Source of the DNA: Mobula hypostoma
Lineage: Eukaryota
Reading direction: 5' to 3'
Assembly: GCF_963921235.1 (NCBI RefSeq)
Contig: NC_086110.1
Span: forward strand, 13,330,001-13,394,000
Length of the DNA: 64,000 nucleotides
Below, piece after piece: positions 20,361 to 59,709 of this stretch. Within the stretch, counting starts at the first letter, position 1. Each line of letters begins with the position of its first letter. The translations under genes and the position numbers were made by a program. Under the pieces are notes generated by a model. It ran no database searches, was not told where the DNA came from, and worked only from the letters and a program-made list of their open reading frames with translations.

Positions 20361-20950
20361 GCGGGAGGCAGAGGAGCGGCAACGAGATCGAAACTTTATA
20401 AATGTTTTAAATACTTTAAGAAGAAATATTTTGTCATTCTGGTTTGGACCAAAAATTGTCTCTCAATATCAGGTTGTGGGGTGGGCGGGGGGGAGGGGTG
20501 CCGCTGGAATCGGCCCCAAATGCAAGACTGTCACAAAAAACTGTGGGTCAATTGTTTAAGAAAAATAACAAGATGGCTTGAGTCGCAAAAATAGATTGAG
20601 GTGCTTTTATTTACCTCAAAACAAGATAAAAATGGGGAAAAAAAACTGTATATATATAGCCACCCTCAAACAAAACACAGAAGAAAACTAAAACCTAAAG
20701 CCTTGGTAACCTGAGGATAATAAATGCTAAGTCCCTCCTCCTAGACCAACCAAAAGGTAATTAACTCAATTATCAAATTACAGATGGTATCCTCCACCAT
20801 CAGCACACCTGTGCAGGTTGCTGCTGCCTCTATATGAGACAGCTCTATGCAGCAGCTCTGTTTCAGACACAGTCCCTATTACTGCTGGGGATGAGTGTTT
20901 TACCAAGTGCGCCATGTGCCGTCCGTAGTCAGTGACGGGCCTTCGTTACA

Positions 20951-20967
20951 TTACCACCCTTCTTCCC
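20951..20967 (-). promoter_or_regulatory. Polypurine tract of the Gmr1-like element
   Basis: GGGAAGAAGGGTGGTAA immediately precedes TGTAAC of the 3' LTR. Confidence 0.8.
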
Positions 20968-25366: not shown

Positions 25367-25384
25367 ATCCCACCACTGCCACCA
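25367..25384 (-). promoter_or_regulatory. Primer-binding site, tRNA-Leu
   Basis: TGGTGGCAGTGGTGGGAT, 2 nt inside the 5' LTR, complementary to the vertebrate tRNA-Leu 3' end (..AUCCCACCACUGCCACCA). Confidence 0.85.
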
Positions 25385-26379
25385 TATGTCACAAAAAGCT
25401 GTGGGTCAATTGTTTACGAAAAATAACAAGGTGGCTTGGGGCCAAAAATACATTAAGCTGCTTTTATTTACCTCAAAACAAGACAAAAACTGGAATATAT
25501 ATATATAGCTTCCCTCAGACTAAACACAAAAGAAAACAAAAACCCAAACCTGAGGCTTATAACTTTATAACTGCTAAACCCCTCCCCCTAGATCAACCAA
25601 AAGCTAATTATCTAAATTATCCAATTAAAGATGGTATGCTCCACCATCAGCACACCTGTTCAGGTTGCTGTTGCCTCTATATGAGACAGCTCCATGCAGC
25701 AGCTCTGGTTCAGACCCAGTCACTATTACTGCAGGGGATGAGTGTTTTACCGAGTGCGCCATGTGCCGCCCGTAGTCAGTGACAGGCCCTTGTCACAAAG
25801 ACACAGACACTGCAGTACTAGGAACAGGACTGAACGAGACCAGGATTCAGGGCCGAGGCTAGGACTTGGGCTAGAAGGAAGGGAACCGGACGTGGAACTA
25901 GGAACAAGGAACCTGGACTAGGACTCCGAGCCAGAGACTGGACACGGACCCGAAACTGGGTCTTGACTCGGGATCGGACCCCGGATCTAGGCGAGGAAAA
26001 GACGTGGCTACAGGATTGGACGTGGCTAGGATATCGGACAGGGCGTGGCTACAGGACTGGACGTGGAAAACCCTGCACAGGACCAGGCACATGGACAGGA
26101 CGAGAACACAAAGCCTGGACTTAGACAGGACGAGGTTCTTGGACTAGGCTTGGACTAGAAGAGACTCCTGGACAGGAGGAAGGAAATCCAGCACAGGACC
26201 AGGGATCTCCAGCACAGGACGAGTGATCTCCAGCCCAGGACGAGGGATCTCCAGCACCTTGTGGGCGAGGTACACCTGGGCTGGGCCAGGTACTGGAACT
26301 AGATGAGGACCCGAAGCTCAGATTTGGACAGGGCGGGAACACGGCGGCTGGACTTGGTCTTGGAAGACAGGAACACAGA

Positions 26380-26650
26380 GCCTCGGACGTGGACTGCACG
26401 CTCAGAGCCTTGAGCGTGGACTGGACGCTCAGAGCCTTGGACGTGGACTGGACGCTCAGAGCCTTGGACGGGGATTGGACGAGGTACTCCGGGGCAGGAC
26501 GGGGCTGTTGGACTCGTCTTAATTGGGCACTTGGGTACGGGACCTGGATTTCTCCTTGGAGCACGGGGCCGGGACCCTTACTAGGACGCAGGGCCGGGAC
26601 CCTTACTAGGACGCAGGGCCGGGACCCTTTTTTGGACGCAGGGCCGGGAT
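26380..26650. repeat. 27-bp and 25-bp minisatellites inside the solo LTR
   Basis: About 3-4 copies of GGACGTGGACTGGACGCTCAGAGCCTT, then about 3 copies of GGACGCAGGGCCGGGACCCTTACTA. Confidence 0.85.
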
Positions 26651-36763: not shown

Positions 36764-38019
36764 TATAGAAACATAGAAACATAGAAAATAGGTGCAGGAG
36801 TAGGCCATTCGGCCCTTCGAGCCTGCACCGCCATTTATTATGATCATGGCTGATCATCCAACTCAGAACCCAGCCTTCCCTCCATACCCCCTGACCCCTG
36901 TAGCCACAAGGGCCATATCTAACTTCCTTTTAAACATAGCTAATGAACTGGCCTCAACAGTTTGCTGTGGCAGAGAATTCCACAGATTCACCACTCTCTG
37001 TGTGAAGAAGTTTTTCCTAACCTCGGTCCTAAAAGGCTTCCCCTCTATCCTCAAACTGTGACCCCTCGTTCTAGACCTCCCCAACATCGGGAACAATCTT
37101 CCTGCATCTAGCCTGTCCAATCCCTTTAGGATCTTATACGTTTCAATCAGATCCCCCCTCAATCTTCTAAATTCCAACGAGTACAAGCCCAGTTCATCCA
37201 GTCTTTCTTCATATGAAAGACCTGCCATCCCAGGAATCAATCTGGTGAACCTTCTTTGTACTCCCTCTATGGCAAAGATGTCTTTCCTCAGATTAGGGGA
37301 CCAAAACTGCACACAATACTCCAGGTGTGGTCTCACCAAGGCCTTGTACAACTGCAGTAGTACCTCCCTGCTCCTGTACTCGAATCCTCTCGCTATAAAT
37401 GCCAGCATACCGTTCGCCTTTTTCACCGCCTGCTGTACCTGCATGCCCACTTTCAATGACTGGTGTATAATGACACCCAGGTCTCGTTGCACCTCCCCTT
37501 TTCCTAATCGGCCACCATTCAGATAATAATCTGTTTTCCTATTTTTGCCACCAAAGTGGATAACTTCACATTTATCCACATTAAATTGCATCTGCCATGA
37601 GTTTGCCCACTCACCCAACCTATCCAAGTCACCCTGCATCCTCTTAGCATCCTCCTCACTGCTAACACTGCCACCCAGCTTCGTGTCATCCGCAAACTTG
37701 GAGATGCTGCATTTAATTCCCTCATCCAAGTCATTAATATATATTGTAAACAACTGGGGTCCCAGCACTGAGCCTTGCGGTACCCCACTAGTCACCGCCT
37801 GCCATTCTGAAAAGGTCCCGTTTATTCCCACTCTTTGCTTCATGTCTGCTAACCAATTCTCCACCCACACCAATACCTTACCCCCAATACCGTGTGCTTT
37901 AAGTTTGCACACTAATCTCCTATGTGGGACCTTGTCAAAAGCCTTTTGAAAATCCAAATATACCACATCCACTGGTTCTCCCCTATCCACTCTACTAGTT
38001 ACATCCTCAAAAAATTCTA
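36764..38019 (-). mobile_element. Young 5'-truncated CR1 LINE (uninterrupted 375-aa RT ORF)
   Basis: VVYLDFQKAFDKVPH..GVPQGSVLGP..KFADDTK..RKNFFTQRVVNLWNSLP with no stops. (TTTCTATG)n tail. Same family as 1592-2135. Confidence 0.95.
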
Positions 38020-39759
38020 TATTGTGGTAAGGGGGAATATAGATGGAAATGCAGTTACTTTATTGAATATATATGCACCCCGAGGAAGTGATATTAGGTT
38101 CTTCCAGAAAATTAGTAATATTATGCTAACAGAAACAGAAGGTCTCTTGATCTGTGGCGGAGACATAAATTTACAATTACAACCAAAGTTAGACTCTTCC
38201 AACAGAAAAAAGTTATGAAACTAAGTCCTTACATAAGAAAGATAACAATCTTTTTGAGAATGTTGGTCTAATTGATATATGGAGGGACCTCTTCCCCGAC
38301 AGAAGGGATTGCACTCATTATTCTGCCGTCCCATTCCATATATACAAGGATAGACTATTTCATAACATTAGGAAAAGATATAGACTAAATAAGTACCTGT
38401 GGAATTGGGACAATAGATGTAAGGGACCATGCACCTATATATTTATCTGTTGATTTTGACGTACAACCAAAGAATACTATTTGCAAACTAAATTCAAGTC
38501 TACTCAATGATCCCCATTTCAGGGAACAAATCAAAAAAGAAACTGGTCTTTACTTAGAATTCAGTGATAATGGAGAGGCTTCTCCTCCCATTCTATGGGA
38601 TACTCTGAAGCCTGTCTTAAGAGGGAAAATTTCAGCGATATCTTCATATAAAGGAAAAATAAGGAATAAATCATCAGAGGAATTACAAAATAAGCTGAAG
38701 GATCAAGGAAAACACAAATTGAGTTTGGCACAGGATACACTGCAGGAAATTTTTAAAAATGGAATGAAATTAATAGTTTGGTTACACAAGAAATTAGAAA
38801 AAAATAATCTTTATGAAACAGAAACACTATGAAAGTGGATCAAAATCAATGAAAATACTGGCGTGGAAACAGAAAAAAAAAAGATAACGGAAAATACTCA
38901 AAACTCTATATTCCAAAGTTCCAGGGGGAAGTATAACCCAAATTGACACCTTCCTGAATTCTTTAGAGCTACCCACTTTAAGTAAAGAACGGAATAGAAC
39001 GATGACTGTTACCATAACTGAAGCTGAACTAAGAACTACAATTAGTAGGCTAAAATTAAGAAAGTCACCAGGATCAGAGGGGTATACGGCAGAGTGGTAT
39101 AAAGAGTTTAGAAGTGAATTAATTACCATTTAACTCCCCACACTGAACAGGACCCTAAGAAAGGTGCAAATGCCACGCATCTGGAAGGAGGTGATAATCT
39201 CAGCTATATCGAAAGAATGTCATAAGATGGTGGCTGAGAACGAACCCAAGTGAAAGACACAGACACTGAAGTATTAGGGACATGACTAGGATACAGGCTG
39301 ATGGCAAGGACACGGACACGAAAACCAGGAACCTGGAATAGAACTGCACAAGGGAGCTAGGAGCCCGAGCTTGGACTCCGAGCCAGAAACTGGACAAGGA
39401 ACCAGTACCTGAGTCTTTCCTCAGGCCTGGACCCCAGAACCAGGCAAGGACGAAGCTTGGCAGGCAGGCAGGATGAGGTTGCAGTCTTAGAGACTTGAGG
39501 CGAGGCTTGGCAGGAGGCAGGAGACTTCACTCGAGGCTTGGCAGGGGGCGTGGACCGAGCCAGAGAGTGGACAAGCATCCAGTACCTGGGTCCTGCCTCT
39601 GGCTCGGACCCCAAAACGAGGCAAGGACCAGGCTTAGCTAGCAGGCAGGACGAAGCTGGAGTCTTAGAGACTTGAGGCAAGGCTTGGCAGGAGGCAGAAG
39701 ACTCGAGGCGAGGCTTGGCAGGAGGCTAGAGGCGTGAGGCGAGGCTTGGCTGGAGGCTA

Positions 39760-40390
39760 GAGACTTGAGGCTAGGCAGGAGGCTGCAGTCTTCAAGCTTG
39801 AGGATAGGCAGAAGGCTGCAGTCTTCGGGCTTGAGGATGGGCAGAAGGCTGAAGTCTTCGGGCCTGAGGCTAGGCAGGAGACTGAAGTCTTCAGGCTTGA
39901 GGCTAGGAAGGAGGCTGGATTCTACAGGCTTGAAGATAGGCAGGAGGCTGCAGTCTTCAGGCTTGAGGATAGGCAGGAGACTGGAGACTTCAGTCTTGAG
40001 ACTAGGCAGGAGGCTGCAGTCTTCATGCTTGAGGCTAGGCAGGAGACTGGAGACTTCAGTCTTGAGACTAGGCAGGAGGCTGCAGTCTTCATGCTTGAGG
40101 CTAGGCAGGAGACTGGAGTCTTCAAACTTGAGGCTATGCCGGAAGCTGCAGTCTTCAGGCTTGAGGCTAGGCAGGAGGCTGCAGTCTTCATGCTTGAGGC
40201 TATGTCGGAGGCTACAGTCTTCAGGCTTGAGACTAGGCAGGAGGCTGCAGTCTTCAGGCTTGAGGCTAGGCAGGAGACTGGAGACTTCAGGCTTGAGACT
40301 AGGCAGGAGGCTGCAGTCTTCATGCTTGAGGCTAGGCAGGAAGCTGGAGACTTCAAGCTTGAGGCTAGGCAGGAGGATGGAGTCTTCATG
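39760..40390. repeat. 33-bp minisatellite in the U5 of array LTR1 (variable copy number in every LTR)
   Basis: Consensus AGGCTTGAGGCTAGGCAGGAGGCTGCAGTCTTC. It gives the 11-aa periodic ORFs (RLEARQEAAVF)n. Other blocks lie at ~41740-42130, 43370-43700, 45070-45480, 46845-47510, 48500-48900 and 50175-50720. Confidence 0.95.
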
Positions 40391-41252
40391 CTTGAGAGTA
40401 TCTTAGCTCCTCCGGGGCAGTGCGCGGTACTCCTGGGCAGGGCGCGGTTCAGCACCCGACGGAGGCATAGAAGAGGAAGGGACAGAACCAACCGCAGGTA
40501 ACGGCGACACGGCCTGGCTTACCCGACGGAGGTAAAGGACAGGAAGGGACAGAAGCAACCGCAGGTAACGGCAAGACCGGTGTGGAGGCAAGGGACAGGA
40601 AGGGGGGCAAGGTACATGATGGCTGCATGACAAGACTGCAGGCGAGACGAGGCTAGAGGTACCAGCAAGAAAAGGTAAGGCTTCAGGCAATGCAAGAAGA
40701 GACGGAAAATTCAGGCGAGCAGAGAGTTACCAGCAAGACAAGGCAGTGCTTCAGGCGAGGAAACAAGAGGGCCTGGTTTACTTGTCCGGAGGCAAGGAGC
40801 AGGAAGGGAGCTAGGTACAGGGTGGCTCCAGGACAAGACTGCAGGCGAGACGAGGCGAGAGTTACCAGCAAGACAAGGCAAGGCGTCAGGCAATGCAAGA
40901 CTAGACGAGAACTTCAGGTGAGGGGAGAGTTACCGGCAAGACAAGGCAAGTCTTCTGGCAAAGCAAGGCGAGACGGGAACTTCAGGCGAGCCGAGAGTTA
41001 CCGGCAAGACAAGGCAGGGCTTCAGACGAGGAAACAAGAGGCAGAGCGAGGGATACAAGAAGCAGGACAAGAACAATCCAGCCGCCACGCCCTGGTCTCT
41101 GAAGGTATTTATGCAGGCTGCCCCAACCTGCATCAGCTGACTCAATTAGAGCTCAACAAGAACAGCAACAGGGTAGACAGGAAAACCTGGAGCAAGGATC
41201 GATGGACCGGACAGTGAAATGGAATACGGACTTAACGGACAGGACAATGTCA

Positions 41253-41424
41253 GTACCACCCACCCCACCCCACGCCTCAACGGGAGCCTCGGGCGACCAA
41301 ACATGGTATCCAGACTATCGACTACCCGGGCGGGTGGGAGGGTATTGAACCAAAAGGAAACCCATGTGGCAAGAGGAAAACGACAGTGTCTTTGTCCCTG
41401 GGTCCATGGTTGGGTGGATTGTTC
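41253..41424 (-). other. Mini internal domain: self-priming PBS, gag-like start, chromovirus 3' end, PPT
   Basis: Minus strand: GAACAATCCACCCAACC-ATGGACCCAGGG (30-codon ORF MDPGTKTL..)..GGTCGCCCGAGGCTCCCGTTGAGG-CGTGGGGTGGGGTGGGTGGTAC|TGACA. Confidence 0.8.
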
Positions 41425-44400
41425 TGTCATATGGTGGTGGCTGGGAGCGGACCCAAGTGCAAGACACAGACACTGAAGTACTAGGGACAGGACAAGGATG
41501 CAGGCTCATGGCAAGGACATGGACACGAAAACCAGGAACCTGGAACATCACTGGACAAGAGAGCTAGGAGCCCGGGCTTGGACTCCGAGCCAGAGACTGG
41601 ACAAGAAACCAGGAGGGTCTTGCCTCTGGCTGGAACCCCAGAACCAGGCAAGGACGAGGCTTGGCTGGCAAGCAGGACAAGGCTGGAAACTTAGAGACTT
41701 GAGGCGAGGCTTGGCAGTTGGCTCGAGACTTGAGGCTTGAGGGTAGGCAGGAGGCTGCAGTCTTCAGGCTTGAGGCCAGGAAGGAGGCTGGAGTCTTCAG
41801 GATTGAGGGTAGGCAGGAGAATGTAGTGTCCAGGCTTTAGGCTAGGAAGGAGGCTGGAGTCTTCACGCTTGAGGATAGGCAAGAGGCTGCAGTGCTCAGG
41901 CTTGAGGCTAGGAAGGAGGCTGCAGTCTTGAGGCTTGAGACTAAGCAGGAGGATGGAGTATCAGGCTTGAGGCTAGGCAGGAAGATGGAGTCTTCAGGCT
42001 TGAGACTAAGCAGGAGGATGGAGTATCAGGCTTGAGGCTAGGCAGGAGGCTGGAGTCTTCAGGCTTGAGGCTAGGCAGGAGGCTGGAGACTTCAGACTTG
42101 AGGCAAGGCAGGAGGCTGGAGTGTTCAGGCTTGAGGGTAGCTGAGCTCCTCCGAAGCAGGGCGCGGTACTCCTGGGCAGGGCGCGGCTCACCTGGGCAGA
42201 GCGCGGATCACCTTGTCAGGGCGCTGTCCTCCTGTGCAGGGCGCGGTACCCCTGGGCACTGCGCCGTTCACCACCAGATGGAGGCATGGGACAGGTTGGG
42301 ACAGAACCAACCGCAGTTAACGGCGAGACGGCTTGGCTTACCCGACGGAGGCAAGGGATAGATAGGAAGGGACGTAACCAACCGCAGGTAACGGCAAGAG
42401 GGCCTGGTTTACTTGTGCGGAGGCAAGGGGCAGGAAGGGAGCTAGGTACAGGGTGGCTCCAGGACAAGACTGCAGGCGAGACGAGGCGAGAGTTACCAGC
42501 AAGACAAGGCAATGCTTCAGGCAATGAAAGACTAGACGAGAACTTCAGGTGAGGGGAGAGTTACCGGGAAGACAAAGCAAGGCTTCTGGCAAAGCAAGGC
42601 GCGAATGGAACTTCAGGCGAGCCGCGAGTTACCGGCAAGGCAAGGCAAGACTTCAGGCGAGGAAACAAGAGGCAGAGGAAGGGATTCAAGAAGCAGGACA
42701 AGAACAATCCAACCGCCATGCCCTGGACTCTGAAGGTATTTATGCAGGCTGCCCCAACCTGCATCAGCTGACTCAATTAGAGCTCAACAAGAACAGCAAC
42801 AGGGTAGACAGGAAAACCTGGAGCAAGGATCGATGGACCGGACAGTGAAATGGAATACGGACTTAACGGACAGGACAATGTCAGTACCACCCACCCCACC
42901 CCACGCCTCAACGGGAGCCTCGGGCGACCAAACATGGTATCCAGACTATCGACTACCCGGGCGGGTGGGAGGGTATTGAACCAAAAGGAAACCCGTGTGG
43001 CAAGAGGAAAACGACAGTGTCTTTGTCCCTGGGTCCATGGTTGGGTGGATTGTTCTGTCATATGGTGGTGGCTGGGAGCGGACCCAAGTGCAAGACACAG
43101 ACACTGAAGTACTAGGGACAGGACAAGGATGCAGGCTCATGGCAAGGACATGGACACGAAAACCAGGAACCTGGAACATCACTGGACAAGAGAGCTAGGA
43201 GCCCGGGCTTGGACTCCGAGCCAGAGACTGGACAAGAAACCAGGAGGGTCTTGCCTCTGGCTGGAACCCCAGAACCAGGCAAGGACGAGGCTTGGCTGGC
43301 AAGCAGGACAAGGCTGGAAACTTAGAGACTTGAGGCGAGGCTTGGCAGTTGGCTCGAGACTTGAGGCTTGAGGGTAGGCAGGAGGCTGCAGTCTTCAGGC
43401 TTGAGGCCAGGAAGGAGGCTGGAGTCTTCAGGATTGAGGGTAGGCAGGAGAATGTAGTGTCCAGGCTTTAGGCTAGGAAGGAGGCTGGAGTCTTCACGCT
43501 TGAGGATAGGCAAGAGGCTGCAGTGCTCAGGCTTGAGGCTAGGAAGGAGGCTGCAGTCTTGAGGCTTGAGACTAAGCAGGAGGATGGAGTATCAGGCTTG
43601 AGGCTAGGCAGGAGGCTGGAGTCTTCAGGCTTGAGGCTAGGCAGGAGGCTGGAGACTTCAGACTTGAGGCAAGGCAGGAGGCTGGAGTGTTCAGGCTTGA
43701 GGGTAGCTGAGCTCCTCCGAAGCAGGGCGCGGTACTCCTGGGCAGGGCGCGGCTCACCTGGGCAGAGCGCGGATCACCTTGTCAGGGCGCTGTCCTCCTG
43801 TGCAGGGCGCGGTACCCCTGGGCACTGCGCCGTTCACCACCAGATGGAGGCATGGGACAGGTTGGGACAGAACCAACCGCAGTTAACGGCGAGACGGCTT
43901 GGCTTACCCGACGGAGGCAAGGGATAGATAGGAAGGGACGTAACCAACCGCAGGTAACGGCAAGAGGGCCTGGTTTACTTGTGCGGAGGCAAGGGGCAGG
44001 AAAGGATCTAGGTACAGGGTGGCTCCAGGACAAGACTGCAGGCGAGACGAGGCGAGAGTTACCAGCAAGACAAGGCAATGCTTCAGGCAATGAAAGACTA
44101 GACGAGAACTTCAGGTGAGGGGAGAGTTACCGGGAAGACAAAGCAAGGCTTCTGGCAAAGCAAGGCGCGAATGGAACTTCAGGCGAGCCGAGAGTTACCG
44201 GCAAGGCAAGGCAAGACTTCAAGCGAGGAAACAAGAGGCAGAGGAAGGGATTCAAGAAGCAGGACAAGAACAATCCAACCGCCATGCCCTGGACTCTGCA
44301 GGTATTTATGCAGACAGCCCCAACCAGCATCAGCTGACTCAATTACAGCTCAACAAGAACAGCAACAGGGTAGACAGGAAAACCTGGAGCAAGGATCGAT

Positions 44401-47400
44401 GGACCGGACCGTGAAGTGGATTACGGACTGAACGGACAGGACCATGTCAGTACCACCCACCACACCCCACGCCTCAACGGGAGCCTCGGGCGACCAAACA
44501 TGGTATCCAGACTATGGACTACCCTATTGAACCGAAAGGAAACCCGGGTGGCAAGAGGAAAACGACAGTGTCTTTGTCCCTGGGTCCATGGTGGGGGTGG
44601 ATTGTTCTGTCATATGGTGGAGGCTGGGAGCGGACCCAAGTGCAAGACACAGACACTGAAGTACAAGGGACAGGACTAGGATGCAGGCTGATGGCAAGGA
44701 CATGGACATGAGAACCAGGAACCTGGAACAGGTCTGGGCAATAGAGCTAGGAGCCCGGGCTTGGACTCCAAGCCAGAGACTGGACAAGAAACCAGGAGGG
44801 TCTTGCCTCTGGCTCGAACCCCAGAACCAGGCAAGGACGAGGCTTTGCTGGCAAGCAGGACAAGGCTGGAAACTTAGAGACTTGAGGCGAGGCTTGGCAG
44901 GATGCAGGAGACTTGAGACGCGGCTTGGTAGGATGAAGTCGACTTGAGGCGAAGCTTGGCAGGAGGCAGGAGACTTGACACGAGGCTTGGCAGGAGGCAG
45001 GAGACTTGACACGCGGCTTGGCAGGAGGCAGGAGACTTGAGGCGAGGCTTGGCAGTTGGCTCGAGATTTGAGGCTTGAGGGTAGGCAGGAGGCTGCAGTC
45101 TTCATGCTTGAGGCCAGGAAGGAGGCTGGAGTCTTCAGGCTTGAGGACAGGCAGGAGGCTGCAGTGTTCAGGTTTGAGGCTAGGAATGAGGCTGGAGTCT
45201 TCAGGCTTGAGGGTAGGCAGGAGGCTGGAGCCTTCAGATTTGAGACTAGGCAGGAGAATGGAGTGTTCAGGCTTCAGGCTAGGAAGGAGGCTGGAGTCCT
45301 CACGCTTGAGGATAGGCAGGAGGCTCCATTCTTCAGGCTTCAGGATAGGCAGGAGGCTGGAGCCTTCAGGTTTGAGGCTAGACAGGAGGCTGCAGTGTTC
45401 AGGTTTGAGGCTAGGAAGGAGGCTGCAGTCTTCAGGCTTGAGGCTAGGCAGGAGGCTGGAGTCTTCAGGATTGAGGGTAGCTGAGCTCCTCCGATGCAGG
45501 GCGCGGTACTCCTGGGCAGGGCGCGGCTCACCTGGGCAGAGCGCGGATCACCTTGTCAGGGCGCTGTCCTCCTGTGCAGGGCGCGGTACCCCTGGGCAGT
45601 GCGCCGTTCACCACCAGATGGAGGCATGGGACAGGTTGGGACAGAACCAACCGCAGTTAACGGCGAGACGGCTTGGCTTACCCGACGGAGGCAAGGGATA
45701 GATAGGAAGGGACGTAACCAAACCGTAGGTAACGGCAAGAGGGCCTGGTTTACTTGTGCGGAGGCAAGGGGCAGGAAGGGAGCTAGGTACAGGGTGGCTC
45801 CAGGACAAGACTGCAGGCGAGACGAGGCGAGAGTTACCAGCAAGACAAGGCAATGCTTCAGGCAATGCAAGACTAGACGAGAACTTCAGGTGAGGGGAGA
45901 GTTACCGGGAAGACAAAGCAAGGCTTCTGCCAAAGCAAGGCGCGAATGGAACTTCAGGCGAGCCGAGAGTTACCGGCAAGACAAGGCAAGACTTCAGGCG
46001 AGGAAACAAGAGGCAGAGGAAGGGATTCAAGAAGCAGGACAAGAAGAATCCAACCGCCATGCCCTGGACTCTGAAGGTATTTATGCAGGCAGCCCCAACC
46101 AGCTTCAGCTGACTCAATTACAGCTCAACAAGAACAGCAACAGGGTAGACAGGAAAACCTGGAGCAAGGATCGATGGACCGGACCGTGAAATGGATTACG
46201 GACTGAACGGACAGGACAATGTCAGTACCACCCACCACACCCCAAGCCTCAACGGGAGCCTCGGGCGACCAAACATGGTATCCAGACTATGGACTACCCT
46301 ATTGAACCGAAAGGAAACCCGGGTGGCAAGCGGAAAACGACAGTGTCTTTGTCCCTGGGTCCATGGTTGGGTGGATTGTTCTGTCACATGGTGGAGGCTG
46401 GGAGCGGACCCAAGTGTAAGACACAGACACTGAAGTACAAGGGACAGGACTAGGATGCAGGCTGATGGCTAGGACATGGACACGAGAACCAGGAACCTGG
46501 AACAGGTTCTGGACAAGAGAGCTAGGAGCCCGGGCTTGGACTCCGAGCCAGAGACTGGACAAGAAACCAGGAGGGTCTTGCCTCTGGCTCGAACCCCAGA
46601 ACCAGGCAAGGACGAGGCTTTGCTGGCAAGCAGGACAAGACTGGAAACTTAGAGACTTGAGGCGAGGCTTGGCAGGATGCAGGAGACTTGAGACGAGGCT
46701 TGGTAGGATGAAGTCGACTTGAGGCGAAGCTTGGCAGGAGGCAGGAGACTTGACACGAGGCTTGGCAGGAGGCAGGAGACTTGACACGCGGCTTGGCAGG
46801 AGGCAGGAGACTTGAGGCGAGGCTTGGCAGTTGGCTCGAGACTTGAGGCTTGAGGGTAGGCAGGAGGCTGCAGTCTTCAGGCTTGAGGCCAGGAAGGAGG
46901 CTGGAGTCTTCAGGCTTGAGGATAGGCAGGAGGCTGCAGTGCTCAGGTTTGAGGCTAGGAAGGAGGCTGGAGTCTTCAGGCTTGAGGGTAGGCAGGAGGC
47001 TCCATTCTGCAGGCTTGAGGCCAGGAAGGAGGCTGGAGCCTTCAGATTTGAGACTAGGCAGGAGAATGGAGTGTTCAGGCTTCAGGCTAGGAAGGAGGCT
47101 GGAGTCTTCACGCTTGAGGATAGGCAGGAGGCTCCATTCTTCAGGCTTCAGGATAGGCAGGAGGCTGGAGCCTTCAGGTTTGAGGCTAGACAGGAGGCTG
47201 CAGTTTTCAGGTTTGAGGCTAGGAAGCAGGCTGGAGTCTTCAGGTTTGAGGGTAGGCAGAAGGCTGCAGTCTTCAGGCTTGAGGATAGGCAGGAGTCTGG
47301 AGCCTTCAGATTTGAGGCTAGGCAGGAGAATGGAGTGTTCAGGCTTCAGGCTAGGAAGGAGGCTGGAGTCTTCACGCTTGAGGATAGGCAAGAGGCTACA

Positions 47401-50400
47401 GTGCTCAGGCTTGAGGCTAGGAGAAAGGCTGCAGTCTTTAGGCTTGAGACTAAGCAAGAGGATGGAGTATCAGGCTTGAGGCTAGGCAGGAGGCTGGAGT
47501 ATTCAGCATTTAGGCTAGGCAGAAAGCGAAGCTGGGCAGGGCGTGGCTCACCTGGGCAGAACGCGGATCACCTGGTCAGGGCACTGTACTCCTGGGCAGG
47601 GCGCGGTACTCCTGGGCACGTCGCCGTTCACCACCAGATGGAGGCATGGGACAGGTTGGGACAGAACCAACCGCAGGTAACGGCGAGACGGCTTGGCTTA
47701 CCCGACGGAGGCAAGGGATAGGAAGGGACGTAACCACCGCAGGTAACGGCAAGAGGGCCCGGTTTACTTGTGCGGAGGCAAGGGGCAGGAAGGAAGCTAG
47801 GTACAGGGTGGCTCCAGGGCAAGACTGCAGGCGAGACGAGGCGAGAGTTACCAGCAAGACAAGGCAGGGCTTCAGGCAATGCAAGGCGAGACGAGAACTT
47901 CAGGTGAGGGGAGAGTTACCGGCAAGACAAGGCAAGGCTTCTGGCAAAGCAAGGCAAGAATGGAACTTCAGGCGAGCCGAGAGTTACCGGCAAGACAAGG
48001 CAGGGCTTCAGGCGAGGAAACAAGAGGCAGAGGAAGGGATACAAGAAGCAGGACAAGAACAATCCAGCCGCCACGCCCTGGTCTCTGAAGGTATTTATGT
48101 AGCCAGCCCCAACCAGAATTAGGTGACTCAATTAGAGCTCAACAAGAACAGCAACAGGGTAGACAGTCTTGCCTCAGGCCCGGACCCCAGAACCAGGCAA
48201 GGACGAAGCTTGGCAGGCAGTCCTAGAGACTTGAGGCGAGGCTTGGCAGGAGGCAGGAGACTTCACTCGAGGCTTGGCAGGGGGCGTGGACCGAGCCAGA
48301 GAGTGGACAAGCATCCAGTACCTGGGTCCTGCCTCTGGCTCGGACCCTAGAACCAGGCAAGGACAAGGCTTAACTAGCAGGCAGGACGAAGCTGGAGTCT
48401 GAGAGACTTGAGGCGAGGCTTGGCAGGAGGCAGGTGACTCGAGGCGAGGCTTGGCAGGAGGCTAGAGGCGTGAGGCAAGGCTTGGCTGGAGGATAGAGAC
48501 TTGAGGCTAGGCAGGAGGCTGCAGTCTTCAGGCTTGAGCCTAGGCAGGAGGCTGCAGTCTTCAATCTTGAGGATAGGCAGAAGGCTGCAGTCTTCGGGCT
48601 TGAGGCTAGGCAGGAGGCTGAAGTCTTCGGGCTTGAGGCTCGGCAGGAGGCTGCAGTCTTCAGGCTTGAGGCTAGGCAGGACGCTGGATTCTTCAGGATT
48701 GAGGGTAGGCAGGAGGCTGCAGTCTTCAGGCTTGAGGCTAGGCAGGAGACTGGAGACTTCAGGCTTGAGACTAGGCAGGAGGCTGCAGTCTTCATGCTTG
48801 AGGCTAGGCAGGAGACTGGAGTCTTCAAACTTGAGGCTATGCCGGAGGCTACAGTCTTCAGGCTTGAGGCTAGGCAGGAGAATGGAGTCTTCAGGCTTGA
48901 GAGTATCTTAGCTCCTCCGGGGCAGTGCGCGGTACTCCTGGGCAGGGCGCGGTTCAGCAGCCGACGGAAGCATAGAAGAGGAAGGGACAGAACCAACCGC
49001 AGGTAACAGCGAGACGGCCTGGCTTACCCGACGGAGGTAAAGGACAGGAAGGGACAGAAGCAACCGCAGGTAACGGCAAGACCGGTGCGGAGGCAAGGGA
49101 CAGGAAGGGGGCAAGGTACATGATGGCTGCATGACAAGACTGCAGGCGAGACGAGGCGAGAGGTACCAGCAAGAAAAGGTAAGGCTTCAGGCAATGCAAG
49201 GCGAGACGGGAACTTCAGGCGAGCAGAGAGTTACCGGCAAGACAAGGCAGTGCTTCAGGCGAGGAAACAAGAGGGCCTGGTTTACTTGTGCGGAGGCAAG
49301 GGGCAGGAAGGGAGCGAGGTACAGGGTGGCTCCAGGACAAGACTGCAGGCGAGACGAGGCGAGAGTTACCAGCAAGACAAGGCAAGGCTTCAGGCGAGGA
49401 AACAAGAGGCAGAGGAAGCGATACAAGAAGCAGGAGAAGAACAATCCAACCGCCACGCCCTGGTCTCTGAAGCTATTTATGCAGGCAGCCCCAACCAGCA
49501 TCAGCTGACTCAATTACAGCTCAACAAGAACAGCAACAGGGTAGACAGGAAAACCTGGAGCAAGGATCGATGGACCGGACAGTGAAATGGAATACGGACT
49601 TAACGGACAGGACAATGTCAGTACCACCCACCTCACCCCACGCCTCAACGGGAGCCTCGGGCGACCAAACATGGTATCTAGACTATGGACTACCCTGTTG
49701 AACCGAAAGAAAACCCGGGTGGCAAGAGGAAAACGACAGTGTCTTTGTCCCTGGGTCCATGGTTGGGTGGATTTTTCTGTCATATGGTGGTGGCTGGGAG
49801 CGGACCCAAGTGCAAGACACAGACACTGAAGTACAAGGGACAGGACTAGGATGCAGGCTCATGGCAAGGACATGGACACGAAAACCAGGAACCTGGAACA
49901 GGTCTGGACAAGAGAGCTAGGAGCCCGGGCTTGGACTCCGAGCCAGAGGCTGGACAAGAAACCAGGAGGGTCTTGCCTCTGGCTCTAACCCCAGAACCAG
50001 GCAAGGACGAGGCTTCGCTGGGAAGCAGGACAAGGCTGGAAACTTAGAGACTTGAGGCGAGGCTTGGTAGGATGAAGTCGACTTGAGGCGAAGCTTGGCA
50101 GGAGGCAGGAGACTTGACATGAGGCTTGGCAGGAGGCAGGAGACTTGAGGCGAGGCTTGGCAGTTAGCTCGTGACTTGAGGCTTGAGGGTAGGCAGGAGG
50201 CTGCAGTCATCAGGCTTGAGGCCACGAAGGAGGATGGAGTCTTCAGGCTTGAGGATAGGCAGGAGGCTGCAGTATTCAGGTTTCAGGCTAGGAAGGACGC
50301 TAGAGTCTTCAGGCTTGAGGGTAGGCAGGAGGCTGGAGCCTTCAGATTTGAGGCTAGGCAGGAGAATGCAGTGTTCAGGCTTCAGGCTAGGAAGGAGGCT

Positions 50401-51714
50401 GGAGTCTTCACGCTTGAGGATAGGCAAGAGGCTGCAGTGCTCAGGCAGGCTTGAGGCTAGGAAGGAGGCTGCAGTCTTTAGGCTTGAGACTAAGCAGGAG
50501 GATGGAGTATCAGGCTTGAGGCTAGGCAGGAGGCTGGAGTATTCAGCCTTGAGACTAAGCAGGAGGATGGAGTATCAGGCTTAAGGCTAGGCAGGAGGCT
50601 GGAGTCTTCAGGCTTGAGGCTTGGCAGGAAGCTGGAGACTTCAGGCTTGAGGCTAGGCAGGAGGCTGGAGAATTCAGGCTTGAGGCTAGGCAAGAGGCTG
50701 GAATCTTCAGGCTTGAGGGTAGCTGAGCTCCTCCGGAGCAGGGCGCGGTACTCCCGGGCAGGGCGCGGCTCACCTGGGCAGAGCGCGGATCACCTGGTGA
50801 GGGCACTGTCCTCCTGGGCAGGGCGCGGTACTCCTGGGCACGGCGCCGTTCACCACCAGATGGAGGCGTGGGACAGGTTGGGACAGAACCAACCGCAGGT
50901 AACGGCGAGACGTCTTGGCTTACCCGACGGAGGCAAGGGATAGGGAGGGACGTAACCAACCGCAGGTAACGGCAAGAGGGCCTGGTTTACTTGTGCGGAA
51001 GCAAGGGGCAGGAAGGGAGCTAGGTACAGGGTGGCTCCAGGACAAGACTGCAGGCGAGACGAGGCGAGAGTTACCAGCAAGACAAGGCAAGGCTTCAGGC
51101 AATGCAAGGCGAGACGAGAACTTCAGGTGAGGGGAGAGTTACCGGCAAGACAAGGCAAGGCTTCTGGCAAAGCAAGGCAAGAATGGAACTTCAGGCGAGC
51201 CGAGAGTTACCGGCAAGACAAGGCAGGGCTTCAGGCGAGGAAACAAAAGGCAGAGGAAGGGATACAAGAAGCAGGACAAGAACAATCCAGCCGCCGCTCC
51301 CTGTTCTCTGAAGATATTTATGCAGCCAGCCCCAACCAGAATTAGGTGACTCAATTAGAGCTCAACAATTACAGCAACAGGGTAGTCAGGAAAACCTGTT
51401 GCAAGGATCAATGGACCGGAACGTGAACCGGAATACAGACTAGACGGACGGGACCATGACAAAGAAGGCAAGGAAGAAATTGTATGTGTGACATTTCGAC
51501 CAATATTTGTTCTAAATGTGGATTACAACATATTTACCTCCATCGTGGCCAAACGATGAGAAGAGTAGAGTCGAAACCCAGACTGATACATAATGATCAT
51601 AGAGTTTTATACAACAACGCCAAACACAAGACAATGTACGAAGGACACTTCATATTATTGATCATATAAAATAATTGAAATTCAAGCAATAGTGATAGGA
51701 TCAACACCGGAGGA

Positions 51715-53640
51715 GCATGAGACGTGACTGTTTATGTGTCAGGCCGCCTAAAAGCGGAAGGGTTGAAACTCGCACTGGACAAGTTCCTGCTCTTAAGACG
51801 TCAGTTAACTAAGTCATTCACATAGTCTCCCCGGATGTAGTGGCGACGGATCCATCGAAGATACAGGCGGTAACCACATGGCCAGGGACCAAGAATGTGA
51901 GGGTCGTACGTTCATTCCTTGGATTTTGTGGGTACTACCGGAGATTTGTAAAGGGCCACTCCAGAGTAAGCCATCAGTTGAATGAACTTCTGTATGATTA
52001 CCCTCCCTTAGTGAAGGAAGGTATGGAACAAAGGGAGAAGAAGGCAAGGTTTATCTTCGCTCTTCGGAGCCTTTAGAGGAAAGATGGGATGCAAAGTGTG
52101 AAGAGGCATTTCAGCTGCTGAAGAGTTATTGACTAAAGCACCCTTGCCTGCCTTTGCAAAGCAACAGTTGCCGTATTTATTGCACACAGACGCCAGCCGT
52201 TATGGATTGGGCGGTGTTCTATATCAGGATGAAGATTTTGATTTCTGCCTTGCATATCGGCCTCGAAGTCAAAGCAATGATGCGGCTGCGTTGTCACGAA
52301 GTTCTCATGAGGTGCCGGCAAAAGACTGAGAGTGGGAGGACGCTCCTGTCTCTGGTATTAAGGCAATGTGCCAGTTTTCCACAGCTGGGGAATCAGAGCA
52401 CAGACTTTAGCCTGATACAGCGATGATTATTTGGGAGCTTCGAACCATGCCATTCCCTAAGTATATTGCAACTTGACCGCGCTGAATACGAAGAAGCTGC
52501 TCGCCTCGAGTACTTCGGATTTGGCAGCAGCTCAGCAAGCCGACACTTGTAAAGCTGCCTTCTAGTTTTCTGTTGTCAAGGTCGTTATGGGCGCAGTTGA
52601 GAAGACAAAACACCCTGCCATGCCCATACCTATGAGGAAATGGGACAAACTGGACTTGAGGAACAAAGCTTTACACAGTGTTCCATTTCACCCAGATAGA
52701 CCTCGACGTTCCCAGTTGCGTTTCCCTGAAAGAAATATTCGAAGATTGTACTGAAGTCACTTTAGGTCATTTGGCATTTGCTAAGACTTCCGGATTAGTC
52801 CAAGATCGGTTTTATTGGACACGAGTGAAGCCTGAAGTTGAAAAGTACTGCACGTCGTGCATCCAATGCATTCGGAGGAAGACGCTGCCCACCAGAGTTG
52901 TCTGTTAGACGCTGCCTTTATCTCATTTACAAAGAAATGGATCACTTGTCAGTGTGTGTATGGAATTCCTGTCCATGGAGCCTGATTCCAGTAACACTGC
53001 GAACGTCTTGGTCACCACGGACCAATACACCAGATATGCTCAAGCCTTCTCCACTAAGGATCAGAGAGTATCCACAGTTGTCAAAATGTTATGAGATAAA
53101 TATATTATTCATTATGGCCTCCTGAGAAGGATACACAGTAAGCAGGGAAGAGATTTTTAGAGCCTGGTCATATATAAGTTACTCAGCATGCTTGGAGTTG
53201 AGAAGTCAAAGACTACGCCATGTCACTCTTAAGGTGATCCTCAGCCTGAAAGATTCAACAGCACATTGATCGACATGCTTGTGACCCTGGATGCCAACAG
53301 AAAAAAAAAGTGGAGCCAACATATTAGACATTTGATACACTGCTGCAACTGCACACAGAATAAATTGGAGTTGCCGCAGAACACGTATCGGAAGTATGTG
53401 TCTGACGTGAGGAAAGAAATGCAAAAAGCCTATTAGTTAGTAGCAGTTTCTGCTACCAAGCAAAACCAAGGTAAGTTAGAAGAGATATGGTCAAAGAATC
53501 ATATTCTTCCAGTTGATGCCTGGAGAAAGAGTTTGAATAATAAGTTTGGGACTACAAGGGAAGCAGAAGTTTGCCAACCACTGGATTTCTACGGCTTACG
53601 TAGTGGAGAGCCAGATTACAGATTTGCTAGTTATCCGGGT
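51715..53640 (+). mobile_element. Degraded Gypsy pol fragment (RT-RH-IN)
   Basis: VATDPSKIQAVTTWP..VRSFLGFCGYYRRFV; LHTDASRYGLGGVLYQ; integrase core (AFSTKDQR..IHSKQGRDF). Confidence 0.85.
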
Positions 53641-54976
53641 GAAGCCCAGCTCTATAAGACGGTGCACTTTGGAGGCCACCCGAAACTCCGTTCTGCTCAG
53701 GAATCCGCATACTATCTCGTGTCTGATCGAGGTCCTTAATTCATCTCGCAGGTATGGAAGGCCTTCTGTCAAGCCTTAGGTGCCTCGGTCAGCCTGTCTT
53801 CCAGCTTTCACCCACAGACGAACGGGCAAACGGAACGGGTCAACCAGGACTTAGCTACGTTGTATTACAACCAACAATCAATCTACCTGGAGCGACCACC
53901 TCGAGTGGGTTGAGTAAGCCCACAAATCTCTGGTTCGTACTGCCATCGGAAGGTCTCCGTTGAGTACTCCCTTGGGTACCAACCCCCGCTATTCCCGCGT
54001 GAAGAGGAGATTGCGGTGCCGTCTGTTCACGCCCATATCTATCGGTGCCACAAGCTTGACAGACGTACGATCAGCCGATCTCAATAGGAAGATTGCCGAT
54101 CGACACCGAACTCCTGCGCCTCAGTATCGACCTGGGCAGATGGTATGGCTTTCATCCAAAGACATCCCTCTCAAAAACGAGCCTAAGAAACTCACCCCTC
54201 GCTTTCTGGGACTTCTCAAGGTCGAAAATATCGTCAACCCGACAGCAGTCTGAATTAAACTACCAAGATCTATGCACATCCACCCTATTTTTCATGTTTC
54301 CCAATTAAAACCACTTTCCGTCAGCCCCTTGTGTCATATGACCGAAACCCCTCCACCCGCCCCGATCAGCGACAACCATCCGGCATACACCGTCCGACGG
54401 CTACTAGATGTGTGCCGTCACGGCAGGAGACTCCAATACCTGGTCGACTGGGAAGGGTACGGCCCAGAGGAGCGCTCCTGGGTTCCCCGCTTCCTCATCC
54501 TGGACACCTTCCTCATCCAAGACTTCCATCGGGACCATCCGGACAAGCCTGGAGGATCGCCTGGAGGCTTCCGTTTGGACCGAAAACTGTCGTGGTCCCG
54601 TCTGGCAATCCCCATCTTGCTATTACTTCCTTAGTTGGGCCTGAATCCGCTTGTCTGATTTCCAATCATTCCCAGTTCCGCTAATTACAGCCACCTGGTA
54701 CCCACTAGCGAACATAGGATAAAACTCGGGCGGCACAGCCATGCTTTGCCAGTTCGTTGGTCGACTCTAGTGTGAGTAAACCTCGTTTCCTGATTCCTTG
54801 TGACTGTCAGTTCTAAGCTCCACATTATTTCCAGCATACTCTACGTAAACCTTGTTTCCGTGTGAAGACTCTCCTGGATACCGGTTCCCCGTTCGTAGCG
54901 GTGCTAACGCCTCTCGACTCTGCCTCCGCGACTTTGTCCTGCACTTGGGTTCGTCCTCAGCCTCATCTTTGCAACA
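53640..54976 (+). mobile_element. Sushi-like chromovirus 3' fragment (IN, chromodomain, 3' LTR 54588-54976)
   Basis: [27 protein letters not shown]; GQMVWLSSKDIPLK..KLTPRFLG; chromodomain [29 protein letters not shown] runs TGTCGTGG...GCAACA. Confidence 0.9.
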
Positions 54977-55606
54977 ACATTAACATAGATTTCATAACCA
55001 TATGAGCATAATTTCAAAATTAGATTAACATTATCAGAAAGTAAATTCCAGCTGCGTGACAACAAAGGCTATGTGCCCAAGAGCACGTCAGTTACTGCGC
55101 GGCTGCATACCCGCACAGCTTAATTGGAACAGTGGGGGCAAGTGTATACAGACCACATAGGGAGAAGGCTGGTTTCCTAATGAACTGATCTGCCTGCACA
55201 AACTTCTGTAATTTTGGTCATGCTGTTCGTTCCAGTCTCCCGCTGTCTAAATTTTGAGTATTATCATTGACTTGAAACCAGCAAAGAGCCTTGAAGCACG
55301 TCAAGGTTGAACATTGATATACAAGAGCTTCCACATTGTGATCATTACAGACGCGAATTCTCTCTCTACGAAAAAAAAACATCATTTTCACATGGACACG
55401 TGGATAAAGTACCCGTCCAGAGACGGATGTACTATTTTCGTTGGATTAAAAAAAAGGGTCATGCAGAAAAGGATACCCAATAAATAAACAAAGCAACCCT
55501 CTTTGTGTTACGTCACCACGGTTTCGTGTACTGTAGGTGTCACTTTAAAACGCCTGGATGCGGCGGAACTATGACGTCAGTATACCAAGCTGCGACAGAC
55601 CTCTGG

Positions 55607-57066: not shown

Positions 57067-59290
57067 CGGGGGGACTTCCGGGTCGTAAAAAAAGAAAGTA
57101 AACTGTCCCAAAATCGAATTGAGACGAATACTTAATATTCCATAACTATATTAATAAAAGGGGCAAGGATGATGTCGAAAAGAAAATTAAAAAGTCCGCT
57201 CCGAAGGCTGATAAACACAAAGAGACGCACCAAGGCGACGGGCCTAGCTCCCCCACGGCAAGCCAGGACGGAGAGAATGAGGGGGAATCGTTGACTCTGT
57301 CTTTGATTCTCGGAAGGATTCGCGAGTTCCGACAAGATAACAGCAAACAGCTGGAAGATATTAAATGAGAAATAGTAAAAACTAACTCGTGGATAGATGA
57401 AACCGAAGCGAGGATTGTTGGAATTGAAGAGAAGCTACAACACGCCGAGGAAGTGATAGCAGAAATGCTAAAGCTGCTAGAGCAGCTCCAGTGGAAACTA
57501 ATAGATCAAGAAGGCCGCTCAAGAAGGGAAAATGTGAGGATTTACGGAGTTCCCGAAGGAACTGAAGGTAAACCCGGTTTGATGATTCCCTTCGTGGAGA
57601 AGTTGCTGAGAGAGAACCTTGATATACCGGCTGCAAAAGACCTACAGATAGAAAGGGCTCACCGCGCGTTGGCACCACAGCCTCCGGCAAGCGCCCAGCC
57701 CAGATCGATTCTGGTCAGATTTCTCAGTTACAGAACGAAGGAAGAGGTGCTTAAACGGGCATGGCAGAAGAAAAGTTTCACGTGGAGCAATTGTAAAATC
57801 AGTTTAGACCACGACTACGCACCGGGGATTCTTGCCAGACGGAAGGAATATACGGAAACACGGAGGGTCCTGAAGGAAAACAACATCAGATTCCAGACCC
57901 TGTATCCAGCTCGGCTGAGAGTCCTTTACGACGAAGGGACAAAAACTTACGCTACGGTGCAGGAGGCAACATTGGACCTGGCGGACCGGGGACTACCTAT
58001 TAAAGTTATCACCCAACCGGAGTCGCTACTGGAGAGGATTCGGCAGAAGACGTGGAAGCCAGTGTGGTGAGGACGCTCCACACGAACCAGAGTGTCAAAC
58101 TACAAGGAAAAGCTGCAAATATTCAGACGCGAAAGTACAGAGAAAACAGATTAATTAAGAGAAATGACTGAAAAGAATAAATCGGACTTAAAGGTAAAAT
58201 GAAAACTGGTAACTGAAAATAAACTAGACGGAATAACTTGAATGATAGCAATATGGTCGAGACACAAACAGGAGACAATTCTCTATGATTATTCAAACTG
58301 CTGAGGGCCCTCTAACACAGGGTGAAGATAGAGGTTATCCCTCTGAACTGAGGCGGGTCGGTGCTCAGGCCTCACTGTGGGAAGTCGGGAAAAATTTTCA
58401 AATGTTACACGTTCAAAAATGTCTAGGGTGTGGTTATATGTCTTGGTTTACTGTTGAGAAGGGATTGCTTACTGTTTGGTTAGAAAAGGAGAGTGTCTTT
58501 TTTCTACTAGAGAAAAATGCAAACTGAATTGGTAAAAATAATTTCCTATAATGTTAATGGGGTTTTGAATCCAATTAAAAGAAGTAAGATTATGTCTAAA
58601 TTGAAAAAAGAGAGGGCACATATAGCTTTCCTCCAAGAAACACATATGAGCCACTCTGAACATGAAAAATTAAAAAGAATGGGCTTTAAGCATATATTTT
58701 ATTCATTATATAAATTGAGTCACAAAAGAGGGGTAGCTACTTTCATATCAAGTACTCTTAATTATGAACATATTTCAGAGATTAAAGACAAAGAAGGACG
58801 GTTTGTAAAAATTACAGGAAGAATAGAAGGTACAGAAATAACATTGCTAAATGTTTATGCTCCTCCAGGTTGTGAATGGTCATTCTATAGACACATTTTT
58901 GATCTAATGGTCAGTTCTCAAGGGGTAGTAATTTGTGGAGGGGATTTTAACATTAGATTAAATCCTGTATTAGATTCTTCAAGAATAGTTACTCAGAATA
59001 AACCTCTGACTCGAAAAATGAATTTATTAATGGAGGAGTTGGGAATTATAGATGTGTGGAGGGAATTACACCCCACTAGTAAAGATTATACACATTACTC
59101 TTTCCCTCATTCAGCCTATTCAAGGATAGACTATTTCTTTATCTTTAATGCAGATAGACTCAGGATAAAAAAAAACTGTAATATTGCAGCAGTTGATCTG
59201 TCGGATCATAGCCCAGTCTCTATGTCTCTAATCCTGGAATGGAAAATGAGGAAAACACTATGGAGGCTAAACTCACATATACTCAATAAC
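57067..59290 (+). mobile_element. L1 5' portion (5' UTR, ORF1, endonuclease of ORF2)
   Basis: Starts GGGGGACTTCCGG. ORF1 DQEGRSRRENVRIYGVPE..IERAHR..PRSILVRF..LYPARL has one TGA near 57366. ORF2 ISYNVNG..FLQETH..NVYAP..GGDFN..SRIDYF..SDHSPV is open for about 260 aa. Confidence 0.92.
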
Positions 59291-59542
59291 CTGGAAGTCC
59301 CTGCCTGGTTCTGGGCAATGCCGAGGCTATGGGTCCATGTCCAGTCTCGGGCTCGGAGTCCAAGCCTTGCCTTCTAGTCGCTGGTTTCTAGGCCTGGTCC
59401 CTCTTTCCCTAGCCCAAGTCTGCGTTCTTGTCGCTGATCCTGGTCTGAGTCCTGTCACGTCTCTACTCTAGTCAAGTCCTGTTCCTTGTACATCAGTGGC
59501 TGTGTCTTGTATTTGGGTCCGTTCCCAGACCCCATTGTGATA
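59291..59542 (+). mobile_element. U5-end fragment of the same LTR family group, in the opposite orientation
   Basis: Reverse complement tgtatcacaatggggtctgggaacggacccaaatacaagacacagccactgatgtacaagg matches the array LTR terminus. Confidence 0.75.
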
Positions 59543-59709
59543 CAAGGGCGTGACCGTTGGGGAGCTATATTTATATCCAATCCTCGCCTGGGTTGATACT
59601 TTCACCTCTGAAAAACGGTCCCCTTTGTTGTGGTCACAGTCGGTGACTTCGAAAGGATTTCGGAGGATAACGGGAAGATCAATTGAAGATAATGGGAAGA
59701 AATTGGTAA

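Follow-up and report, generated by a model that had tools for sequence, protein, structure and literature searches.

A probable Tf1/sushi-type self-priming signature in a non-autonomous long terminal repeat array of Mobula hypostoma

Introduction

Self-priming of reverse transcription is a common trait of the Tf1/sushi group of retrotransposons with long terminal repeats (LTRs) in fungi, vertebrates and some plants, according to PMC6317226, PMC4600332 and bioRxiv 10.1101/2022.12.06.519325, citing Butler et al. 2001. In Tf1, the 5' untranslated region folds into a compact structure known as the 'pretzel' (bioRxiv 10.1101/2022.12.06.519325). In vertebrates, sushi-ichi and other Tf1/sushi elements are chromoviruses predicted to self-prime (Butler et al. 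2001, as cited in PMC4600332 and PMC6317226).

Here, we analyse a stretch of 64,000 nt from Mobula hypostoma (RefSeq assembly GCF_963921235.1, contig NC_086110.1, positions 13,330,001 to 13,394,000), hereafter the window, to which all coordinates refer. Its minus strand carries an array of about 12.2 kb (39,218-51,461) in which LTRs alternate with short internal remnants. An original prediction, made from the letters of the window, proposed that the array units share a tRNA-independent self-priming signature: a short motif in each LTR whose complement stands immediately behind the LTR. We find that the array very probably carries a genuine Tf1/sushi-type self-priming signature and is a non-autonomous descendant of a Tf1/sushi-type chromovirus (Ty3/gypsy). 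It displays the hallmark of this group, a primer-binding site (PBS) beside the LTR whose pairing partner is LTR sequence of the same element and not a tRNA 3' end.

The array resembles Tf1, Tf2 and Tj1 of fission yeasts in having a self-primer at the predicted 5' end of the RNA, a PBS right after the terminal CA of the 5' LTR, a duplex of about 11 nt, no tRNA PBS and autonomous relatives of the chromovirus type. Unlike these elements, it is found in a fish and has no coding capacity. Furthermore, whereas the pretzel of Tf1 is compact, primer and PBS are here 1.2-1.7 kb apart, with tandem repeats between them.

Array structure and priming motifs

The array is a single LTR-retrotransposon insertion with TG...CA termini, flanked on both sides by the 5-bp target duplication TTCTT (upstream copy at 51462-51466, downstream copy at 39213-39217). 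On the minus strand, its outer junctions read ...gccTTCTT/TGTCATGG (51466-51454, from the first T of the duplication) and ...cttATGACA/TTCTT (39223-39213, from ATGACA), the slash marking the LTR edge. The structural features of an LTR element are present, but the layout is an LTR-remnant unit repeated and not a simple LTR pair: there are seven LTRs of 1,394-2,035 nt, two of them fused, and five internal remnants of 157-172 nt. From 5' to 3', these are LTR1 (49778-51461, 1,684 nt), remnant 1 (49621-49777, 157 nt), a 3'-truncated LTR2 and a 5'-truncated LTR3 (together 46382-49620) that are fused near 48166/48167 without a remnant between them, remnant 3 (46225-46381, 157 nt), LTR4 (44608-46224, 1,617 nt), remnant 4 (44450-44607, 158 nt), LTR5 (43056-44449, 1,394 nt), remnant 5 (42884-43055, 172 nt), LTR6 (41425-42883, 1,459 nt), remnant 6 (41253-41424, 172 nt) and LTR7 (39218-41252, 2,035 nt).

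The LTRs follow one plan. A 172-nt part resembling the unique 3' region (U3), with CATAAATA at nt 140-147, is followed by TGGATTGTTCT at nt 173-183 and then by a tail of 1.2-1.9 kb. This tail, the repeat and unique 5' regions (R-U5), is 63% pyrimidine and consists of tandem repeats of 68, 67, 20, 33 and 31 nt. In LTR6, U3 corresponds to nt 1-172 and R-U5 to the remaining 1.29 kb. The internal remnants contain, in order, GAACAATCCA right after the last A of the LTR, the gag start ACC ATG GAC CCA, a stretch of the pol tail and the G-rich polypurine tract (PPT) GAGGCGTGGGGTGGGGTGGGTGGTAC. The gag start lies 7 nt downstream of the 11-nt complement (ATG at 41407-41405 in remnant 6), about 100 nt of each remnant aligns with the pol C-terminus of related elements, and the PPT directly precedes every internal LTR (in remnant 6 it occupies 41253-41278 and abuts LTR7, TGACATTG). 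All coding sequence has been lost, leaving the array without coding capacity, and this composition makes the element an internal-deletion derivative that keeps only the PBS, gag start, pol tail and PPT.

The motif positions given in the original prediction proved exact. ATAAATA, a TATA-like box, occurs once per LTR at nt 141-147 (51321-51315 in LTR1, 42737-42743 in LTR6 and 41112-41106 in LTR7). The 10-nt motif placed some 30 nt beyond it, TGGATTGTTC, is intact at 41080-41071, 42711-42702, 44277-44268, 48066-48057, 49448-49439 and 51289-51280 and has a single change, TGGATTCTTC, at 46052-46043 in LTR4. Its complement GAACAATCCA is intact at 41424-41415, 43055-43046, 44607-44598 and 46381-46372, that is, in remnants 6, 5, 4 and 3, and is changed at a single base to GAAAAATCCA at 49777-49768 in remnant 1. 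However, the pairing extends over 11 nt rather than 10 (TGGATTGTTCT/AGAACAATCCA) when the last A of the LTR is included. The 11-nt primer sites are located at 51289-51279 (LTR1), 49448-49438 and 48066-48056 (LTR2 and LTR3), 44277-44267 (LTR5), 42701-42711 (LTR6) and 41080-41070 (LTR7). In LTR6, the site represents the predicted first 11 nt of the RNA, and its exact complement, the PBS at 41415-41425, is made of the last A of the LTR and the first 10 nt of the remnant. TGGATTGTTCT begins 31-32 nt past ATAAATA in the LTRs, the canonical distance between a TATA box and a transcription start.

A tRNA-type TGG PBS is absent, as had been stated: the first TGG past the LTR is only found at +19-21, where it is part of the ATGG of the start codon. 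As a control, E2, an LTR element of the window that is unrelated to the array, has a plain TGG-type PBS (TGGTGGCAGTGGTGGGAT) 2 nt past its LTR. No tRNA genes were detected in the window by ARAGORN. On the plus strand, TGTCA TATGGTGG was considered as an LTR end followed by a tRNA-type PBS, and was ruled out once the target duplication and the PPT had set the element on the minus strand.

Allowing up to one mismatch, TGGATTGTTC and GAACAATCCA together have 19 matches in the window, compared with 5.7 expected from shuffles. A junction match of 11 nt anywhere in the 1,459-nt LTR was reached in 13 of 5,000 shuffles. By our own arithmetic, the figure falls to about 1e-5 if the match must lie within a few nucleotides of position +31 counted from the TATA-like box. 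Since the LTR ends are fixed independently by the outer target duplication, the complement can be placed exactly at the LTR/internal junction. What is improbable by chance is this placement, at the LTR end and 31-32 nt past the TATA-like box, and not the mere existence of an inverted pair.

The array copies are 84-100% identical to each other. Over its first 200 nt, LTR1 shares only 84-87% identity with the other LTRs, compared with 93-98% among the latter, and the same holds for the last 250 nt of LTR7 (84-87%, with 94-100% among the others). These divergent edges may reflect either incoming cDNA that recombined into an older resident LTR or homogenisation that stopped short of the edges.

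Covariation in related elements

The relatives of the array inside the window (a solo LTR, the chromovirus fragment C1 and an LTR fragment at 59297-59545) lack a 5' LTR/PBS junction, and covariation was consequently assessed in other genomes. The chromodomain piece of C1 was searched against 1.8 billion representatives, and full elements were then taken as DNA from teleost genomes. The loci retrieved were L001 (Labeo rohita), L002 (Mugilogobius chulae), L003 (Festucalex cinctus), L004 (Cirrhinus mrigala), L006 (Scortum barcoo), L007 and a 3' fragment, L005. They represent five families beyond the window element: L001/L004, L002, L003, L006 and L007. These are Ty3/gypsy elements with a Ty3_capsid/PEG10/RTL1-8_LDOC gag, reverse transcriptase (RT), RNase H, integrase and Chromo/SH3_Tf2-1 domains, and Chromo or SH3_Tf2-1 is present in L001-L004, L006 and L007. 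L001 is named 'Transposon Tf2-6 polyprotein' by NCBI. Their gag matches capsid families (PEG10/RTL1-8) that derive from sushi-ichi.

Their cis-acting layout corresponds to that of the array and is in places identical to it, with PPT GGGGGGTAC/TGTCA, an LTR end in ...ACA, the PBS and then ATGGAYCC. The PPT-LTR junction common to the relatives is GGGG..TAC/TGT.A. In L002, the junction GAACAATCTGGCCACATGGACCCA is plainly homologous to GAACAATCCACCCAACCATGGACCCA of the window, and the PBS reads GAACAATCTGGC compared with GAACAATCCACC. The array remnants align to the segment from PBS to gag start and to the pol C-terminus/PPT of L002, L003, L006 and C1. The window element differs from these relatives, which encode gag-pol, in being a deletion derivative. 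Its LTRs are also three to five times longer than theirs (359-700 nt), and its primer and PBS are separated by 1,222-1,685 nt, compared with 248-561 nt. The original prediction had put this loop at 1.3-1.7 kb, close to the measured range, which is slightly wider. L003 shares with the window element tandem repeats in R-U5, although in a milder form.

Every family has a complementary pair of its own. Listed as primer/PBS, these are TGGATTGTTCT/AGAACAATCCA in LTR6 of the window (11 nt, 1,286 nt apart), GCCAGATTGTTC/GAACAATCTGGC in L002 (12 nt, 248 nt apart), GTCGGATTATT/AATAATCCGAC in L003 (11 nt, 561 nt apart), ACCAGACATT/AATGTCTGGT in L004b and the 3' LTR of L001 (10 nt, about 280 nt apart), GCCAGATCGT/ACGATCTGGC in L006 (10 nt, 386 nt apart) and GTCCGGTAT/ATACCGGAC in L007 (9 nt). 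In all relatives the PBS begins 0-2 nt past the LTR. The primer starts 28-32 nt past a TATA-like box in four further families (five elements), while no such box is recognisable in L002. The observed match length was attained in 2-18 of 5,000 shuffles in the four relatives that were shuffled (L002, L003, L001/L004 and L006).

When five families were aligned on their homologous PBS, with L007 standing apart as a sixth, 6 of the 12 duplex columns were changed on both sides, giving different Watson-Crick pairs, and no pair was broken inside the duplex of any family. The compensatory change between families that the original prediction had proposed to look for was therefore found. This cross-family covariation excludes both a chance repeat and a shared cellular primer, whether a tRNA or a tRNA half.

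Two of these loci deserve separate mention. In L001, the self-primer block of the 5' LTR (840-1198) is missing its six initial bases, GCACCA, whereas the 10-nt complement of the PBS is preserved in the 3' LTR (5549-5914). L006 (1-16222 of the retrieved locus, Scortum barcoo CM041536.1) is itself a tandem LTR-internal-LTR array, with four LTRs, a period of about 4.96 kb and 98% identity, and it reproduces the array architecture seen in the window while retaining an intact coding region. With two of the seven loci arranged in this way, the clade may tend to form arrays.

Proposed mechanism

In the mechanism that we propose, the RNA would start at or adjoining the T of TGGATTGTTCT (LTR nt 173), and its first 11 nt would pair with the PBS across the pyrimidine-rich R-U5 of 1.2-1.7 kb. 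A helper RT would cleave with its RNase H after about nt 11, and the freed 3'-OH would prime minus-strand strong-stop DNA through U5 and R. The duplex lengths of 9-12 nt are compatible with release of the primer by RNase H. Gag, protease, RT and integrase would be supplied in trans by an autonomous sushi-like element. These steps are those of the Tf1 mechanism as described in PMC4600332 and bioRxiv 10.1101/2022.12.06.519325.

The R-U5-PBS folding that had been suggested as a check was recovered in part, with the window RNA and L002 closing by the primer-PBS duplex. For the window RNA (1,317 nt, beginning at the predicted start and ending shortly beyond the PBS), both the minimum free energy (MFE) and the centroid structures are closed by the 11-bp duplex, followed by a one-base bulge and 3 bp more. 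Compared with shuffled sequences, neither L002 (z = 0.50) nor L003 (z = -0.60) is more stable, and overall folding energy is uninformative for these two elements.

Alternative explanations

About one 10-nt inverted pair is expected in any 1.6-kb sequence by our estimate, and the array copies share descent, with 6/7 primers and 4/5 PBSs intact being what neutral copying would produce. The match could thus have arisen once by chance in a 1.6-kb unit and been copied as the array grew, with no role in priming. We consider this highly improbable. The match falls both at the LTR/internal junction and 31-32 nt past the TATA-like box, and five other families, whose LTRs cannot be aligned with those of the array, have at both positions a complement of their own, with both arms altered in six columns. 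Equally improbable is an incidental LTR match beside a PBS whose actual partner is a small cellular RNA, such as a tRNA or half of one. Half-tRNA primers are known in some Ty1/copia lineages (PMC6317226), which provides a precedent. Nevertheless, no TGG lies at the LTR end or close to it, an Rfam scan of one array unit returned nothing at the gathering score, and the PBS letters vary by family while always tracking the LTR site of the same element, which a conserved cellular RNA would not do.

The pairing between 5' end and PBS might also be real and selected, yet serve RNA circularisation, control of gag translation or packaging/dimerisation, with priming achieved otherwise. In keeping with this, the duplex of every family precedes the gag start codon, by 7 nt in the window element and by 3-9 nt in the relatives, and over a loop of a kilobase efficient intramolecular priming would seem more difficult than in Tf1. 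However, no alternative primer site exists beside the LTR, the duplex abuts the LTR end, where plus-strand transfer demands a PBS, and the same signature has been shown experimentally to act as primer in Tf1, as described in PMC4600332 and bioRxiv 10.1101/2022.12.06.519325. We regard a role apart from priming as improbable.

Several observations weigh against self-priming by a Tf1/sushi-type element as we propose it. The conservation of the motifs within the array is by descent and not by selection: the units did retain 6/7 primers and 4/5 PBSs, as predicted, but these counts say nothing on selection because copying at 3-6% divergence would yield the same, and they add no evidence. The one mutated primer and the one mutated PBS hit the same base pair, in different units and without compensation. 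The proposal that the units keep their cis signals is supported by the compensatory change between families, but is qualified by these two mutations and by a divergence among units of 3-16%; the present copies are probably relics. The transcription start is placed by TATA spacing, at a sequence that does not resemble a textbook initiator, and the assignment to the clade is drawn from domains, gag type and database names. No autonomous element with the LTR of the array occurs within the 64-kb window. The full fold of L003 lacks the primer-PBS duplex, and when the first 70 nt were co-folded with the U5 end and PBS in five families, the central duplex was recovered in the window element only, with no accessory helices consistent between families that would correspond to the two extra duplexes of the Tf1 pretzel. 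Repeat numbers differ among units, so that part of the 1.2-1.7-kb loop may postdate the insertion. Finally, the sequencing runs that contain array sequence offer no transcript support, although they do not indicate silence either: these are eight small-share runs of Logan contigs, none on record as RNA, and the four that were aligned gave hundreds of pieces, mostly below 200 nt (longest listed 774 nt) and without transcript starts or ends, which are probably DNA of related copies.

The family is represented in these contigs by many further copies. The plus strand in runs X1, X2 and X4 reads GAACAACCCAG where the window reads GAACAATCCAG (51268-51290). This corresponds to the primer variant TGGGTTGTTCT, for which the compensating PBS would be GAACAACCCA.

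Possible priming over a kilobase

It is possible, although somewhat doubtful, that the lineage completed retrotransposition with 1.2-1.6 kb of tandem repeats between self-primer and PBS. Three observations support this. A 1,739-nt solo LTR of the window, about 70% related to those of the array, has its own target duplication and carries other repeats in the corresponding position; some further family copies in the Logan contigs share the LTR boundary (49,777/49,778) but differ in their flanks; and the MFE and centroid folds of the window RNA retain the closing helix. The 5' end would reach the PBS either over an extended loop with little structure or in trans, on a second RNA packaged together with it. 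As a speculation, the low self-complementarity of the pyrimidine-rich R-U5 may favour the long-range duplex. If priming did occur over this distance, minus-strand strong-stop DNA would exceed 1 kb.

Other elements in the window

C1 (53740-54979, plus strand) is the 3' fragment of a related autonomous chromovirus. It comprises an integrase C-terminus, SH3_Tf2-1 and a chromodomain (Chromo, E 1.2e-8) that reaches 54631, together with a short 3' LTR running from 54588 to about 54976-54979, the two ends of which are homologous to the LTR ends of the array (TGTCGTGGTCCCGTC... and ...TGCACTTGGGTTCGTCCTCAGCC...). Two distinct pol remnants of Ty3/gypsy type follow one another on the plus strand (51813-53433 and 53740-54631), each with its own integrase-core end, one of which reads GDPQPERFNSTL...; only the second remnant, C1, is followed by an array-related LTR. 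A further related LTR, truncated at its 5' side, is represented by about 250 nt of its 3' end (59297-59545, plus strand) and finishes in ...CCCATTGTGATACA, with no PBS-like sequence after it.

The solo LTR (20467-27479, minus strand, 1,739 nt of its own sequence) belongs to a giant-LTR family about 70% related to that of the array and is flanked by the target duplication TTGAG. It has a homologue of the primer site, TGGACTTTTC, at 27310-27301 and no PBS. Its R-U5 is also made of tandem repeats, with periods of 21, 27 and 25 nt (26165-26674) that differ from those of the array, and its terminus is ...CTGATA instead of ...CA. The solo LTR is split by the nested element E2 (20529-25797, minus strand), which has 420-nt LTRs of 84% identity and the target duplication GTCTT. 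The domain order of E2 is gag, protease, integrase and RT/RNase H, and integrase precedes RT in Gmr1-like elements as well.

Remnants of long interspersed nuclear elements (LINEs) flank the array at 36863-37990 (minus strand) and at 37922-38218 and 58517-59377 (plus strand). They include a CR1/L2-like RT open reading frame (ORF) of 375 aa and L1-like endonuclease ORFs, names given from a reading of the translations. LINE-derived sequence was apparently the insertion site of the array.

Significance

The window element fits neither of two definitions of non-autonomous LTR elements well. It resembles miniature terminal-repeat retrotransposons (TRIMs) and large retrotransposon derivatives (LARDs) in having no ORF, an internal domain of 157-172 nt, a retained PBS and PPT, and presumed mobilisation in trans. 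Long internal domains characterise LARDs, and it is by their small terminal repeats that TRIMs are defined (PMC6934838). The LTRs of the window element, in contrast, measure 1,394-2,035 nt, so that only its tiny internal domain is TRIM-like. The unusual features of the element are the distance of 1.2-1.7 kb between primer and PBS, the tandem-repeat R-U5, the minute internal domain and the arrangement as a tandem array.

The mechanism was already known for the Tf1/sushi group and is left unchanged by this finding, to which the window element contributes an additional member. What it offers is a comparative case that cleanly confirms self-priming of the Tf1/sushi type in a non-autonomous fish element. 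It also suggests a rule for annotation, namely that the bases just past the CA of the LTR complement a site about 30 nt after the TATA box of the same LTR. Finders that search for tRNA-based PBSs miss such elements because the PBS complements the element's own LTR. The self-priming signature outlasts the deletion of nearly the whole coding region and, provided that the giant R-U5 already existed when the element transposed, the operating distance of the self-primer would extend far beyond that of the compact yeast model.

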